DNA of 63,691 nucleotides, the filler included, from Pelomyxa schiedti (taxonomy: Eukaryota > Protista > Evosea), in assembly GCA_020536535.1 (NCBI GenBank). It is 10 parts of 10 records of this genome, joined end to end, with 100 filler letters (N's around TTAATTAATTAA, not from the genome) between each part and the next. Parts side by side here need not be neighbours in the genome. Positions count along the whole stretch, not along the records: positions 19,644 to 25,885 come from JAHLWZ010000706.1; 9 more parts are not named here. One strand, written 5' to 3'. The translations under genes were made by a program, and so were the position numbers. Within the stretch, counting starts at the first letter, position 1. The number at the start of each line of letters is the position of its first letter. Of this stretch, positions 19,644-25,885 are shown piece after piece. The notes beneath the pieces were generated by a model, which made no database searches, had not been told where the DNA came from, and was given only the letters and a program-made list of their open reading frames with translations.

Positions 19644-19840
19644 TTCAGAAGGCTGCCGATGATGATAAAAACCAAGAAGCCATGCACAACCTGGCTGTTT
19701 ATTATTATGGTGGAACAGGTGTCAAGCAAGACTTCAGCAAGGCTGCAGCTCTCTTCCAGCAGGCCCTTGATTTCGGACACACAGGTTCAGCTTATGGACT
19801 TGGGCTCTGCTACTTCGATGGGGTCTCTGAATCACAGGTC
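19644..19840 (+). CDS. Sel1-repeat protein fragment
   Basis: KAADDDKNQEAMHNLAVYYYGGTGVKQDFSKAAALFQQALDFGHTGSAYGLGLCYFDG is a canonical Sel1 repeat pair. Confidence 0.8.
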
Positions 19841-20212
19841 AGTGGTTTGGAAAATGAGAGGAGACATGTGGAGAAACAAGCAACAACGGGTTGCAGGGAC
19901 TGTAGGCTTGTTTCTGATTGTTGATGTTTTGTGCCGTGGGGGGGTTGCTGCGGCGACGACGAATCAGGTCCCACCTCGGCACCGTGGTCCTGACATGAAA
20001 CACAGAGTTCGAATTATTCGATGAGTACAACGAGGGAAGACCATGCCACTAGTGGTGAAGTGATAGTTGAAATAAAAATTAATAATGTAGAAAGGTCTTT
20101 TCCAACCCATACGAAAAGTCCCGCCATGACACCATCCCTTTGTTGTATTTGCAGCAGCTTTCCACTGATGAAGACAGTTGTGGCTGTCATCCCATAGAAA
20201 AAAAAAACTGAG

Positions 20213-20795
20213 ATGGAAGGCGCAACAGAGTTCGACGACGATGCGGCCCGTTTGGAAGCAAAGACAGGAGCGCAGAGGGTACATTCTCAGTGTGTCGTTG
20301 ACGGTCTGGCGTGAAATCGTTCCCCTGGCGGTGCCTGCAAAGCAGTTATGGGTGCTGGTGCAGTCGAGGAGGACATGAAACGACGAAGAGGAAGGTGGTT
20401 GTGGTGCACCACGGTATTTTTTGGGCTGGGGTGCGCGGGTCTTGCAAGGAGCGAGAGGTGCGCTGAATGGGTTGTGGGACACGCCGTCGGAACGGGGAAT
20501 AACAACAAGGAGTGCCTCACTGTGCTCAAAGGACTCTGTGCTGGTATTACCTCTGATATGATTATTGGAGGACTTGTGTGTGGCTGTTTGATCCACTTGG
20601 CATGTGTATGTAAATGTGTATGATGAAGAAGCTTATCACACACGACATGAAGGAGTCCACTTGGAGGTGGCACACGAACTTGTTGTTTGTATGTATGGGC
20701 TGCCTGAAGACACACATAGAGTCAGAGCACCATTGGTCATTCTCCCACACACCCCCTTCGGACCACTCTTGGCGTTATATCGAGCCGGAGGGTAA
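20213..20795 (+). pseudogene. Degenerate member of an expanded divergent ankyrin-like family
   Basis: LARSERCAEWVVG...NNKECLTVLKGLCAG|VHLEVAHELV with an in-frame stop upstream and early termination. Confidence 0.4.
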
Positions 20796-21016
20796 ATCAG
20801 CACCCACTACAACAACAAGCCTCTCTAACATTGGTGGGGGAGCCACGTGTGTGTTTTCGCAACAGTCAACCCTCCACACCTCCCCAGCGTCGGGGGTCGT
20901 CGCACCGCTCAACCTCACTAGTGATGTTTTCTGTTGTGTTGGTTTTTTGATCAAGCAAGCTTTCATGGAACGTTGGCAAAACGGAAATAGATTTTGCTGT
21001 AGTAGCCGGCACAACC

Positions 21017-24000
21017 ATGTTTCAGTGGTTCAAGTCACACAAGGGGCCACGTGTGGGACCCGATGAGTGGTTCCGTGCCGCGTTTGCTGGCGACACCGAC
21101 ACACTGCGGAGTCTGCTGGCCCGCGACCACTACCTACTAAACTCTGTATCCGACGAACTACAACGAGTGGTGTGAAATGCGTATAAACGCCTTTTTTTTT
21201 TTTTGTTCACACGATAATGATTCGTTTTGCGCGGGCGCACGCGCACACACAGACAGCGTTGCATGCGGCCACGTGGGCGGGGAAACCACAATGCGTTGAG
21301 TTCCTGTTGTCAATGAATATTGATGTCAATTCTCAGGTTTAAGGGCCCTTATTTTGGGGTACTCACTCACAAACTTGTATCTCTCACTTCACAGACTGTG
21401 TGCTCTACTATCCTGATTATGTTTTCACTCTCTTTCCTCTAAAAACGTAAATTACAGGGGGTGCCTGTACGTCTTATTGCGTTTAATTATTAATTTTCTG
21501 ACTTGCTTCAATTTCTCTCTCTTTGCTTCACTCTGATAAACTCAGCGAGTGTGTAACTGCTCCCAACCCTATTTATTCATCAATTTCTGACTTCCTTCAA
21601 TTTCTCTCTCTTTTCTTCACTCTGTGATAAACTCAGCAAGTGTGTAACGACTTCCAACCCTTTTTATTGCGTTTATTCATCAATTTCTGACTTGCTTCAA
21701 TTTCTCTCTCTTTCCTTCTCTCTGTGGAATGTTTAGTTTGTGTGTAACTGCTCCCCAACCCTGTTTATTCATCAAATTCTGACTTGCTCCAATTTCTCTC
21801 TCCTTGCTTCACTCTGTGATAAACTCAGGAAGTATGTAACTGCTCCCAACCCTTTTTATTGCGTTTATTCATCAATTTCTGACTTGTTTCAATTTCTCTC
21901 TCTTTTCTTCACTCTGTGATAAACTCAGTCAGTGTGTAACTGCTCCAAACCCTTTTTATGGTGTTTATTCATCAATTTCTGACTTGCTTCAATTTCTCTC
22001 TCTTTTCTTCACTCTGTGGCATGTTTAGTGTGTGTGTAACTGCTCCCAACCCTTTTTCATCAATTTCTGACTTGCTTCAATTTCTCTCTCTTTTCTTCAC
22101 TCTGTGGAATGTTTAGTATGTATGTAATCGCTCCCAACCATTTTTATTGCCGTTATTCATCTAATTCTGACTTGCTTCAATTTCTCTCTCTTTTCTTCAC
22201 TCTGTGATAAACTCAGCCAGTGTGTAACTGCTCCCAACCCTGTTTATTCATCGAATTCTGACTTGCTTCAATTTCTCTCTCTTTTCTTCGCTCTGTGATA
22301 AACTCAGCGAGTGTGTAACTGCTCCCACCCCTTTTTATTGCGGTTATTCATCAAATTCTGACTTGCTTCAATTTCTCTCTCTTTTCTTCGCCCTGTGATA
22401 AACTCAGCAAGTGTGCAACTGCTCCCCATCCCTTTTTATTGTGTTTATTCATCAATTTCTGACTTGCTTCAATTTCTCTCTCTTTGCTTCACTCTGTGAC
22501 ATGTTTAGTTTGTGTGTAACTGCTCCCAACCCTTTTTATTGCGTTTATTCATCAATTTCTGACTTGCTTCAATTTCTCTCTCTTTTCTTCTCTCTGTGGC
22601 ATGTTTAGTTTGTGTGTAACTGCTCCGAACCCTTTTTATTGCCTTTATCCATCCATTTCTGACTTGCTTCAATTTCTCTCTCTTTTCTTCGCTCTGTGAT
22701 AAACTCAGTCGGTGTGTAACTGCTCCCAACCCTTTTTATTTCGTTTATTCATCAATTTCTGACTTGTTTCAATTTCTCTCTCTTTTCTTCTCTCTGTGGC
22801 ATGCTTAGTTTGTGTGTAACTGCTCCCAACCCTTTTTATTGCGTTTATTCATCAAATTCTGACTTGCTCCAATTTCTCTCTCTTTTCTTCACTCTGTGAT
22901 AAACTCAGTCAGTGTGTAACTGCTCCCAACCCGTTCTATTGCGGTTATTCATCAATTTCTGACTTGCTTCAATTTCTCTCTCTTTTCTTCTCTCCGTGGA
23001 ATGTTTAGTATGTGTGTAATGTGTGTAACTGCTCCGAACCCTTTTTATTGCGTTTATTCATTGATTTCTGACTTGCTTCAATTTTCTTCACTCTGTTATA
23101 AACTCAGGAAGTATGTAACTGCTTCTAACCTTTTTTATTGCGTTTATTCATCAATTTCTGACTTGCTTCAATTTCTCTCTCTTTCCCTCTCTCTGTGGAA
23201 TGTTTAGTATGTGTGTAACTGCTCCCAACCCTTTTTTATTGACTTGCTTCAATGTCTCTCTCTTTCCTTCTCTCTGTGGAATGTTTAGTATGTGTGTAAC
23301 CGCTCCCCAACCCTTTTTCAAATTCTGACTTGCTCCAATTTCTCTCTGTGACACTTTTTTTCATTTTTCTACCTGTTGTTGGATAATTGGATCCTTTTAT
23401 TACCATAAAGGGAGTAAGTACACTCCCTGCCAGCTTTTTGTTCTAACTTTCCACGATTTTTATGCTCACTGCTGCAGATTGTATGAACTCCACTCCTTGA
23501 ATCTTTCCTGTGCTTACCTTCTTATTTTTCAGGAAGTATGACTTTTTTCTTGTTCTTGTTGTTCCTCACATATCTTTTGGGGTCTCTTTATAATTGGAAG
23601 GGTGATGTATGTACCCTTTGGTTGATGCTTGACACAAAACTTAATTTTCGTCTCCTTCTCTCCCAGACCACGCTTCATCTTGCCTGCAGAGAAGGAAACG
23701 TTGCGATTGCGAAACAACTTCTATCTTGTGTGGCTATCAGCACTCACATCAAGGTTGTTTCCCCCTATTTGATATGTGTTGTAATTTTCCTGTTGGCACA
23801 GAACAAGGAGGGAAAAACAGCACTTGATAGCTCGAAAAATGATCAAGTGCGTCAAGCCGTGTGTCCAGTGACAACATCAGCAATAACGCAGGCAGTCACC
23901 TCTCCCAAAACATCCCAACAACAACCACATCCCAGACCGCCCTCTACTACGAACGATCCATCACCATCATCATTCACCCCACCAAAACCACAGCCACAAA

Positions 24001-25885
24001 CAGCGACTGTAGAGGCAACAGCGAGACCAACCACAACAATGGCGACCAGCAAAGTGCTCCCCAAAGCTCTTGACGAAGGTGATGACAGAGACTGCTCAGA
24101 AATCGAGGTGAAGCAGCTGAAGAGTTTAGTGAAAAACCCCTTCCTCAAATGAAAATGCAAACGCACTTTGTGACAGATGATATCACAGAACTGAAGGCAA
24201 GAATCACGCAATTGGAGGAAGAAAACACAAATAACCTGAATCTTCTCCATGAAGAAAGAAAACAACATGCGACCACCCAACAAAGAATTAAAGAAATGAA
24301 ACGAATCTATGAAGAAAGAGAAACAGATAACCAACAAAGATTTCGTGAGCTTCAACAACAATGTTTGTGCTCCCCTTTCTTCCTTCCTTCTCCTTTCAGA
24401 TCTTCTTTTTTGCGTTTCTCATCAGCTCATGTGCACATCATCAAGGGAAACATAATTCAGATGTGTGTTTTGTTGTTTGCCTTGACAATAGGAATCTCTT
24501 AACAACATGCATCCACACACAGATGGAGCTCCAAAGCTTGCAAGAAAAAACTGTGTCCGACATGACTGCAAAGAACAAGGGTTTGAATACACCTGCCTCC
24601 TCCAGTTGAACTCATCATTGGCTCCCTCCTCACTGGGGTTTTTTTTTCCCCTTTTTCCAAAAACAGAACTCATGGAACTGGAGGCACACATAACAACATT
24701 GGAGGAAGAAAGTGCCATGAACCTGAAAAGGTTTTGTGACGAGAGAGCATCTGACCAACAAAGATTTCGTGATCTCCAACACTGTTTGTGCTTGCTACCC
24801 ACTCAACACACATCCCCTTTTTTCTCAACCCTAAGCCACACCAACACATACATGCAGCATATAATAACACGGCACCACACTAACAATTCTAATTCTGTCA
24901 ATACAGACACAAATCATGTTATGTCACATGTTGAACAAGGAGAAGGCACGTGGCGCAACATTCTCCCTGAAAACAATAAGACCAACGGCTGCAAGCAATC
25001 GCAACTCAGGGTCACGTTTGAGGACCTTCCCTCATTTGATGAAATTGTGTGTGGATCCTGTCCCCTTCAAATGGTGCTTTCCTCTCTTGAAGCTCCGCCC
25101 TTTTCTTTTTGAAGCTTTCCCCACCTCCCTTTTTTTCTCGTTGTTTGCGATGTTTCTAACTGGTTGTTTTGTTCAAAAAAGATTGTGAAGCTTATCGTTT
25201 CAAGGAAGTTTGGAGTTGAACCAACACAACAAGTGATTTNNNNNNNNNNNNNNNNNNNNNNNNNNNNNNNNNNNNNNNNNNNNNNNNNNNNNNNNNNNNN
25301 NNNNNNNNNNNNNNNNNNNNNNNNNNNNNNNNNNNNNNNAAACAATAAGACCAACGGCTGCAAGCAATCGCAACTCAGGATCACGTTTGAGGACCTTCCC
25401 TCATTTGATGAAATTGTGTGTGGATCCTGTCCCCTTCAAATGGTGCTTTCCTCTCTTGAAGCTCCGCCCTTTTCTTTTTGAAGCTTTCCACACCTCCCTT
25501 TTTGTCTCGTTGTTTGCGATGTTTCTAATTGGTTGTTTTGTTCAAAAAAGATTGTGAAGCTTATCGTTTCAAGGAAGTTTGGAGTTGAACCAACACAACA
25601 AGTGATTTTCACTGTCGGTTCAGAAAACAACAACTCCGAGGAACTGCTGCCGACCGATTCTTTCATTACCTTGGGTGACATTCAACAGCGACAACAAGAC
25701 AGTGGCAGCAGCAACAGAAACAGAGGTGTTGTTCAAATCAAGGTTCGAATCAAATCAACCATGCCAATCCAAGAGAAAGACCTGAAAGTTGTTTCCCCAC
25801 TTGGAGTCGGATCGTATGGAACTGTTTTCAAGTGCACCTTCCATGATCACAACGTGATGACCACTTCCTCCTCATCATCATCCTC
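21017..25885 (+). CDS. Ankyrin-repeat / coiled-coil / ubiquitin-like / protein kinase gene with a micro-exon array; 3' truncated
   Basis: Exons 21017-21166 (WFRAAFAGD), 21253-21336 (TALHAATWAGKPQCVEFLL...DVNSQ), 23667-23753 (TTLHLACREGNVAIAKQLL), 23802- (NKEGKTALD), coiled-coil exons, then the kinase Gly-loop LGVGSYGTVFKC. Confidence 0.85.
21475..23350 (+). repeat. Tandem array of 19 units of ~100 bp (some shortened); each unit looks like an intron plus a 3-nt micro-exon
   Basis: Exact 100-bp period at 22520/22620/22720/22820/22920. Unit structure GT(G/A)TGT...CTGAC...polypyrimidine...(C/T)AG-NNN. Confidence 0.92.
24970..25607 (+). repeat. ~270-bp direct duplication flanking a 100-N gap (probable scaffolding overlap or allele)
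   Basis: About 24971-25239 is near-identical to 25340-25607. Confidence 0.85.

Follow-up and report, generated by a model that had tools for sequence, protein, structure and literature searches.

Candidate codon-sized exons in the ankyrin hairpin of a kinase gene family of Pelomyxa schiedti

A putative chain of micro-exons between two ankyrin exons

We analyzed a 63,691-nt stretch of Pelomyxa schiedti DNA (assembly GCA_020536535.1), hereafter the window, and in it a locus at positions 19644-25885, a 6,242-nt contig carrying an ankyrin-kinase gene whose structure was reconstructed by hand from open reading frames (ORFs), paralog alignments and RNA joints. Two ankyrin exons of this gene lie 2.3 kb apart, and we judge with a probability of roughly 0.7 that the intervening DNA consists of about 25 short introns, each followed by an exon of 3, 6 or 9 nt, which together would encode the hairpin loop of a TKL-family kinase. 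From the comparison of its members, the layout of the gene family looks like a real, unusual encoding of a hypervariable protein loop.

The flanking exons were compared with the Pfam Ank model (PF00023). Exon 2 aligned with model positions 4-30 of 33 (E=4e-6, 27.3 bits against a cut-off of 21.1), its repeat stopping at about position 31, and exon 3 with positions 4-23 (21.6 bits, curated cut-off 21.1). The original prediction, made from the DNA alone, had estimated that some five ankyrin residues are missing between the two; the model returned exactly five hairpin residues (positions 32, 33, 1, 2 and 3), the fourth of which is the conserved Gly. Exon 2 is kept in eight sister loci.

The same prediction had divided the gap into 25 units, each a micro-exon with AG before and GT after it. 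All 25 were verified at the coordinates proposed and are in frame, with implied introns of 52-119 nt. The 19 units assigned to a tandem array were recovered both by Tandem Repeats Finder (TRF), which returned periods of 100 and 200 nt, and by the unit parse. Each array intron begins with GTGTGTAAC and contains a CTGAC branch-like motif and a pyrimidine tract before its final YAG, while the array codons encode, in order, R Q F E S C Y P R Q F F S F S Y E Y Y. Two types of unit occur in the array, type A of the form ...GATAAACTCAG/NNA/GTGTGTAAC and type B of the form ...GGAATGTTTAG/TNT/GTGTGTAAC.

The ten A-type units of the window have their codons at 21546, 21637, 21829, 21929, 22217, 22308, 22408, 22709, 22909 and 23108. 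The A-type unit of the sister loci (...ATAAACTCAG) has GGA in almost every case; expansion to 10 copies and diversification to CGA, CAA, GAA, TCA, CCA and TCG, all within one or two steps of GGA, are seen only in the window. The donor of the unit at 23009 is duplicated by 9 nt (GTGTGTAAT GTGTGTAAC, window 23009-23030), giving two possible 5' splice sites.

On either side of the array stand units of unique sequence. The first micro-exon is ATT or ATG in the sister loci, and its acceptor and donor are conserved in eight aligned loci. The second had been proposed as the triplet GGG (21458-21460); its position was upheld, whereas its length is better read as the 9 nt GGGGTGCCT, since AG, nine bases and GTAYGT occur at this place in eight of eight aligned loci (the window and seven sisters). 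A 3-nt reading is also possible only in the window and in L010, so GGG could still be used here. The inner six bases of the 9-nt exon vary among loci, yielding GPA, GKR, VEP, GET, GEL, GVP and GEP.

Downstream of the array, GGA, ATT, GAA and GGTGAT form what we call the framework, and these micro-exons are very likely real to judge from their conservation. A conserved TTCTAAC branch motif lies in the intron preceding ATT (23478). GGTGAT provides the conserved Gly two residues ahead of T-x-L-H, and its donor is used in annotated sister models (...KGD/TALH in P0027 and P0028). The product of the framework, G-I-E-G-D, has by itself the canonical five-residue length of the hairpin, with Gly at the conserved place. 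If all units of the window were included, the loop would read T-GVP-RQFESCYPRQFFSFSYEYY-GIEGD and count 28 residues.

The non-repeat flanks, 491 nt in total, contain 12 AG dinucleotides, six of which are followed by NNN-GT and two more by N6-GT. This excess of AG-NNN-GT is significant by a binomial calculation (p 2e-5) and by Markov shuffling (p 2.5e-4), and since the enrichment is in unique sequence, copying does not account for the pattern there. Recursive splicing at zero-length exons was rejected, as the flanks hold no AG/GT with zero spacing, the spacing being 3, 6 or 9 nt.

Sister loci and gene family

The architecture is repeated at eight further loci, namely L002, L005 (two loci), L008, L009 (one on each strand), L010 and L011. 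Their common plan runs from exon 2 (...VNSQ) through ATT, ACT or ATG, the 9-nt exon and n array units (n = 4-19) to GGA, ATT, GAA or CAA, GGTGAT and exon 3 (T[A/T]LH...). A dynamic-programming parse tiled the window and six sisters fully, with introns of 52-138 nt and exons of 3, 6 or 9 nt, and found the same units with some longer gaps in L010 and in the minus-strand locus of L009. The spread from 4 to 19 units among the sister loci agrees with the earlier suggestion of growth by tandem duplication. Unit identity is 0.77-0.88 within an array and among its closest relatives and about 0.4 between array groups.

Both unit types were searched by blastn against 11 loci and the window (~152 kb of P. 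schiedti DNA), and every match lay in a family member, at the homologous position. An origin as an introner or dispersed repeat had been considered on the ground that the DNA depth of the array is ~100 times the unique depth; it was discarded because the unit is confined to family loci, and the high depth is accounted for by multiple paralogous arrays and summed contigs. A metagenome scan for the unit junction pattern gave no match. A protein homology search with 23667-24050 returned nothing either, its length filter shutting out the longer annotated relatives and its collection containing no transcript-derived proteins of P. schiedti. A repeat fragment at L003 416-732, close to the contig end and upstream of the kinase gene P0003, is probably a tenth array. 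Isolated YAG-NNN-GTRHGY sites were also noticed in other kinase genes, on the plus strand of L006 (605, 1151, 2717, 2929, 3575 and 4724), and may be single micro-exons elsewhere in the genome.

The intron-less relatives P0005 and P0006 carry a variable 14-residue stretch at the homologous hairpin, which suggests that an enlarged variable loop is a trait of the family. In the locus of P0005 (L001) the ankyrin domain lies in a single exon and there are no micro-exons, so that it serves for comparison of loop length only.

The module preceding the kinase domain was used in a HMMER search of 1.84 billion protein representatives, which returned 22 relatives. The 16 whose source was looked up are all P. 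schiedti proteins, as are the 38 of 38 matches of a second search with P0002 as query, and the looked-up relatives therefore describe an expanded, lineage-specific paralogous family. This module of about 100 residues (VKLI[IV]SRKFGVEPTQQ...IKVRIKS; window 25548-25760 and paralogs) has no Pfam match and was found only in P. schiedti proteins, within the same search and the 16 of 22 sources looked up. The kinase part present in the window is limited to the start of the Gly-loop, GVGSYGTV, at the contig end, a piece without a Pfam match; in paralogs with 72-88% identity over the module, the Pkinase/PK_Tyr_Ser-Thr domains are complete and the proteins are named as TKL kinases.

Conservation and variability of the units

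In seven aligned loci, 14 of the 15 framework bases show no variation, compared with 88 of the 271 positions in introns (Fisher p 3e-6), and column identity is higher in the framework than in the first 30 nt of exon 3 (99% vs 89%). The array triplets behave in the opposite way. In the window, the triplet is the most variable 3-column window of the repeat unit (rank 1 of 75), as the original prediction had noted, with 5.7 parsimony steps per site, the remainder of the unit having 1.2. The five homogeneous arrays all show 5-10 times more steps per site at the triplet than elsewhere in the unit, with tree-based p values of 4e-7 for the window array (W), 1e-8 for L002, 1e-4 for L005b, 5e-5 for L008 and 3e-3 for L011; tree-free allele counts give p values of 0.001-0.07. 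This load contradicts a neutral intronic minisatellite with even variation. The changes affect the first two codon positions and seldom the third.

The 34 units of old, diverged arrays were then compared column by column. AG and GTGTGTA keep majority frequencies of 0.9-1.0, other columns have fallen to 0.4-0.5 and the triplet stands at 0.3-0.5. Across the nine loci, 92 array triplets comprise 22 distinct codons and no stop, in line with the earlier claim that no unit is a stop, and encode residues rich in Tyr (15), Phe (11), Leu (11) and Gly (10). The probability of finding no stop is about 0.002 under independent position frequencies, a figure inflated by duplicated units.

These patterns show purifying selection on the framework codons and on the splice sites, each unit being kept as a working intron, together with diversifying or at least relaxed selection on the array codons. 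The combination would be hard to explain unless the codons reach the protein; inclusion and translation of the array codons is thus probable on comparative grounds.

RNA and DNA evidence

Four read sets, two single-cell RNA-seq runs (X1 and X2) and two DNA-like runs (X3 and X4), were compared with the locus as assembled contigs. Record 11 of X2 matches exactly and is spliced at 23754-23801, with consistent depth arithmetic (4.5×60/187 = 1.44; 4.5×138/187 = 3.32); the aligner placed this joint at 23751/23800, the position being ambiguous by the two letters AG. Record 5 of X1 (275 nt) consists of 37 unplaced letters followed by exon 3, from exactly 23667, and then by exon 4. The gene is expressed and 23667 is a used acceptor. 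The depth of X1 is 0 over 20953-21513; the adjacent intron is therefore no match for the 37 letters, nor is the end of exon 2 as a placeable block, and such an overhang is what micro-exon-derived sequence would look like. X3 and X4 contain exact unspliced contigs across 20817-21521, in which the boundary of exon 2 with its intron is reproduced exactly.

Joints within the array (for example 21341>22595 and 22569>23336) also occur in X3 and X4. They were rejected as splicing, as the same forms stand in DNA-like contigs, and they are repeat-graph paths or paralog variants.

Proposed mechanism and alternative explanations

The loop would be framed by one codon (T or I) and the 9-nt exon (G-x-x) on one side and by the conserved close G-I-E-GD on the other, with the variable array between them. 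Each unit of about 100 nt holds a full set of intron signals, with a strong donor (GTGTGT or GTATGT), the CTGAC branch-like motif, a long pyrimidine tract and YAG, and in a genome of short introns it would probably be recognized as an intron of its own, leaving one codon behind. Unequal crossing-over or tandem duplication could then lengthen or shorten the loop by exactly one residue per unit, the frame remaining intact because the ~97 intronic bases are spliced out, and substitutions at codon positions 1 and 2 would change the residue. With all units included, the loops of the paralogs would span about 14-28 residues rich in Tyr, Phe, Leu and Gly. Ankyrin domains bind their partners through the face that bears the hairpin loop. 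The core of the original prediction, that codon-sized exons fill the ankyrin hairpin, is thus sustained by the anatomy and by conservation in nine loci, from which we infer inclusion in the mRNA.

Several observations weigh against this interpretation. The RNA data confirm expression and the acceptor at 23667 only, and no transcript sequence containing a micro-exon was seen in them. Record 5 of X1 differs from the window by two mismatches in each piece and no longer follows it beyond 23889, so its source may be a close paralog or a chimera. Neither exon 1 nor exon 2 has RNA coverage in X1 or X2, and unspliced array units occur in the RNA runs (record 4 of X1, an exact match to 22169-22289). 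A contig of an RNA run reads through GGA/GTAAGT unspliced; the same contig is present in a DNA-like run and may represent DNA carry-over or pre-mRNA. As for the statistics, the parsimony tests presuppose a tree, although the array units recombine. The third codon position may be fixed by the needs of the splice sites rather than by coding, and the lack of stops is weak evidence, most array triplets being of the B-type form NNT, which is never a stop.

The alternative that survives best, although unlikely, is that usage is confined to the non-repeat micro-exons (either T, GVP and G-I-E-GD or just G-I-E-GD) and that the array is an intronic minisatellite, arisen by duplication of a single intron-plus-codon unit and removed within one long intron. 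It would account for the unspliced array units of the RNA runs, copies of a unit would inherit AG and GT for free, and G-I-E-G-D already fills a canonical hairpin; the 37-letter overhang would also fit, with micro-exons supplying 15 nt and exon 2 the other 22 nt, provided that the aligner was unable to place the latter. However, a neutral repeat should not, in five independent arrays, vary most in the triplet enclosed by AG and GT, nor should every AG and GT persist in diverged arrays while the remainder decays. Strong splice sites within a long intron would be deleterious rather than conserved, and the array is held at the same position in nine loci with 4-19 units.

A second alternative is regulated combinatorial splicing, in which a few array codons are chosen per transcript and one gene yields a large hairpin repertoire of diversified sensors. 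The original prediction had cast the product as DVNSQ-T-x-x-GD-TTLH, with GGA, ATT and GAA among the alternatives for x, and this form is unlikely, since GGA-ATT-GAA-GGTGAT, as a framework, is conserved in 7 of 7 aligned loci and a fixed T-x-x-GD length disregards both G-I-E and the 9-nt exon. Every exon is in phase 0 and has a length divisible by 3, so the frame survives whichever units are chosen; the near-identical splice sites of the array would make skipping mechanically easy, and codon-sized exons are reported to be alternatively spliced in the NACHT-ANK genes of Tuber (PMC4986451, PMC13449251). On the other hand, short introns would probably be recognized singly, which would make inclusion of every codon the default, and diversity is already germline-encoded across at least nine paralogs, leaving a choice by splicing unneeded. 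We regard regulated choice of this kind as distinctly unlikely. The broader notion of a cassette system, whose units are skipped in varied combinations and in which some ten genes would each produce many loop variants, convergent with the truffle NACHT-ankyrin genes, is rather unlikely as well. If true, such skipping would create a transcript-level receptor repertoire in a unicellular eukaryote, a free-living anaerobic amoeba. A role in non-self recognition is pure speculation.

A further reading, with the loci as pseudogenes in decay or as products of misassembly in a repeat-rich single-cell assembly and the AG-NNN-GT pattern as functionless, is very improbable. In its favor, the contig contains an N gap flanked by a duplication, the gene models are in fragments and exons 1 and 2 have no RNA coverage. 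Against it, RNA shows expression and correct splicing of exons 3 and 4, the reading frames are open, the framework is more conserved than neighboring exon sequence in seven loci on different contigs, and the independent raw-contig sets X3 and X4 exactly reproduce the boundary of exon 2.

Gene anatomy and annotation

The features of the locus are collected in Table 1. The donor of exon 1, GTGGTG at 21167, follows an exon that is also present, with the same boundary, in the sister loci L002, L005 and L011. The donor of exon 4, GTTTAG at 24124, is inferred from a paralogous X2 contig, and an intron at 24581-24666 within the downstream exons is supported by loose ends of X2. The gene is cut off by the contig end, and an assembly gap at 25241-25339 interrupts its downstream exons. 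Near-identical copies of ~270 nt flank this run of N (24970-25240 and 25344-25614), where the annotated protein ends, and are probably a scaffolding artefact.

Table 1. Features of the ankyrin-kinase locus (window positions; a slash marks an exon boundary)
Feature	Position	Strand	Basis or remark
Exon 1, start codon to ...DELQR, N-terminal ankyrin-like helix pair	21017..21166	+	ORF
Intron 1	21167-21252	+	Hand-built gene model
Exon 2, TALHAATWAGKPQCVEFLLSMNIDVNSQ (TALH...DVNSQ; 3' end ...GTCAATTCTCAG)	21253..21336	+	Ankyrin repeat, phase 0 end
Putative micro-exon ACT (Thr)	21395..21397	+	cacag/ACT/gtgtgc after 58-nt intron
Putative micro-exon GGGGTGCCT (Gly-Val-Pro), donor GTACGT	21458..21466	+	AG + 9 nt + GTAYGT
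Tandem array, 19 units, each ~97-nt intron + one codon	21474..23318	+	TRF, unit parse
Array codon starts 1-10	21546, 21637, 21737, 21829, 21929, 22029, 22117, 22217, 22308, 22408	+	
Array codon starts 11-19	22509, 22609, 22709, 22809, 22909, 23009, 23108, 23208, 23289	+	
Putative framework micro-exon GGA (Gly), donor GTAAGT	23411..23413	+	Invariant in 7/7 aligned loci
Putative framework micro-exon ATT (Ile)	23478..23480	+	Invariant in 7/7 aligned loci
Putative framework micro-exon GAA (Glu; CAA in L011)	23533..23535	+	Aligned loci
Putative framework micro-exon GGTGAT (Gly-Asp)	23601..23606	+	Invariant in 7/7 aligned loci
Exon 3, TTLHLACREGNVAIAKQLLSCVAISTHIK (TTLHLAC...HIK; 5' start ACCACGCTTCATCTTG)	23667..23753	+	Second ankyrin repeat
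Ordinary 48-nt intron, GT..AG	23754..23801	+	Spliced contigs in X1 and X2
Exon 4, end of ankyrin domain and Pro/Thr/Gln-rich linker	23802..24123	+	Matches annotated P0032
Intron after exon 4	24124-24176	+	Hand-built gene model
Downstream exons: coiled-coil region, ~100-aa module (VKLIVSRKFGVEPTQQ...), TKL kinase start (GVGSYGTV)	24177..25885	+	

The annotated protein of the locus, P0032 (Pelo_9009, P. schiedti), matches from exon 3 onward and is a truncated model. All annotated family members begin at or just before exon 3, as in 'MY/TTLH' of P0032, and the N-terminal ankyrin exons are annotated as separate small genes. Models split or truncated at the arrays were found at L002 6335-7621, L010 8250-8775 and L011 7705-9002, and among P0024-P0028, P0032, P0037 and P0040; P0025 starts with a translated repeat unit (MTCFNFHSLL...). 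The arrays break present gene models in this way, and similar systems may hide in other intron-rich protist genomes.

The end of a Sel1-repeat exon, cut by the contig start, lies at window 19646-19834 (Pfam Sel1 E=1e-9). Sel1 genes are also found upstream of the sister loci L009 (273-2534) and L011 (6197-7480), and their recurrence may reflect a conserved neighborhood or segmental duplication.

Comparison with known systems

If the array codons are translated, the arrays would constitute a distinct genetic device, in which the length and sequence of a protein loop evolve through unequal crossing-over between introns, each ~100-nt unit accounting for one residue, the frame is never lost and variation is focused on codon positions 1 and 2. 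The array also offers a test of how the spliceosome copes with 3-nt exons when 19 of them follow one another. For P. schiedti the genome paper gives 7.4 introns per gene and makes no mention of micro-exons.

Introner-like elements and intronic minisatellites resemble the array in being repeated sequences with complete splice signals, but the P. schiedti unit is tandem rather than dispersed, occupies one position in one gene family (within ~152 kb), and varies in a non-neutral manner. The micro-exons of animals and plants (3-27 nt, with a neural programme; PMC4317164, PMC7821500, PMC8831610) are likewise very short in-frame exons with strong splice sites, which alter surface loops and are commonly missed by annotation pipelines; they are isolated cassettes between long introns, in contrast with up to 19 consecutive single-codon exons separated by introns of ~100 nt. 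The high-internal-conservation repeats of fungal NLR proteins (WD40, ANK and TPR; PMC9815663, PMC4986451) share with the arrays near-identical tandem units, few hypervariable codon positions, a unit number changed by recombination or unequal crossing-over, and a location in putative binding surfaces. Their unit, however, is a whole exonic protein repeat, whereas that of P. schiedti is ~97% intron and would contribute a single residue.

Arrays of codon-sized exons are a known but very rare kind of system. The closest precedent is that of the NACHT-ankyrin genes of Tuber melanosporum, which the original prediction had rightly named: tens of 3-nt exons in the ankyrin-repeat region, a finding of 2012 (cited in PMC4986451, PMC9815663 and PMC13449251), for which alternative splicing is documented (PMC4986451, PMC13449251). 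In both organisms the 3-nt exons lie in the ankyrin region of an expanded, lineage-specific paralogous family, and diversification of a recognition surface has been proposed. The family described here has a C-terminal TKL kinase where the Tuber proteins have an N-terminal NACHT NTPase; its members have Pkinase/PK_Tyr_Ser-Thr domains but no NACHT domain, and the window exons show only Ank, so it is not a member of the Tuber NACHT-ankyrin family. Its micro-exons all fall in one hairpin, as a homogenized tandem array between conserved framework micro-exons, and are known from genomic comparison, while for those of Tuber alternative splicing is documented. P. schiedti is an amoebozoan (Archamoebae) and Tuber an ascomycete, which would make the device a convergent invention. 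Should the array codons be translated, ankyrin recognition domains with codon-sized exon arrays would be known from two cases, this one being the first outside fungi, and convergent evolution of a diversification mechanism would be indicated.

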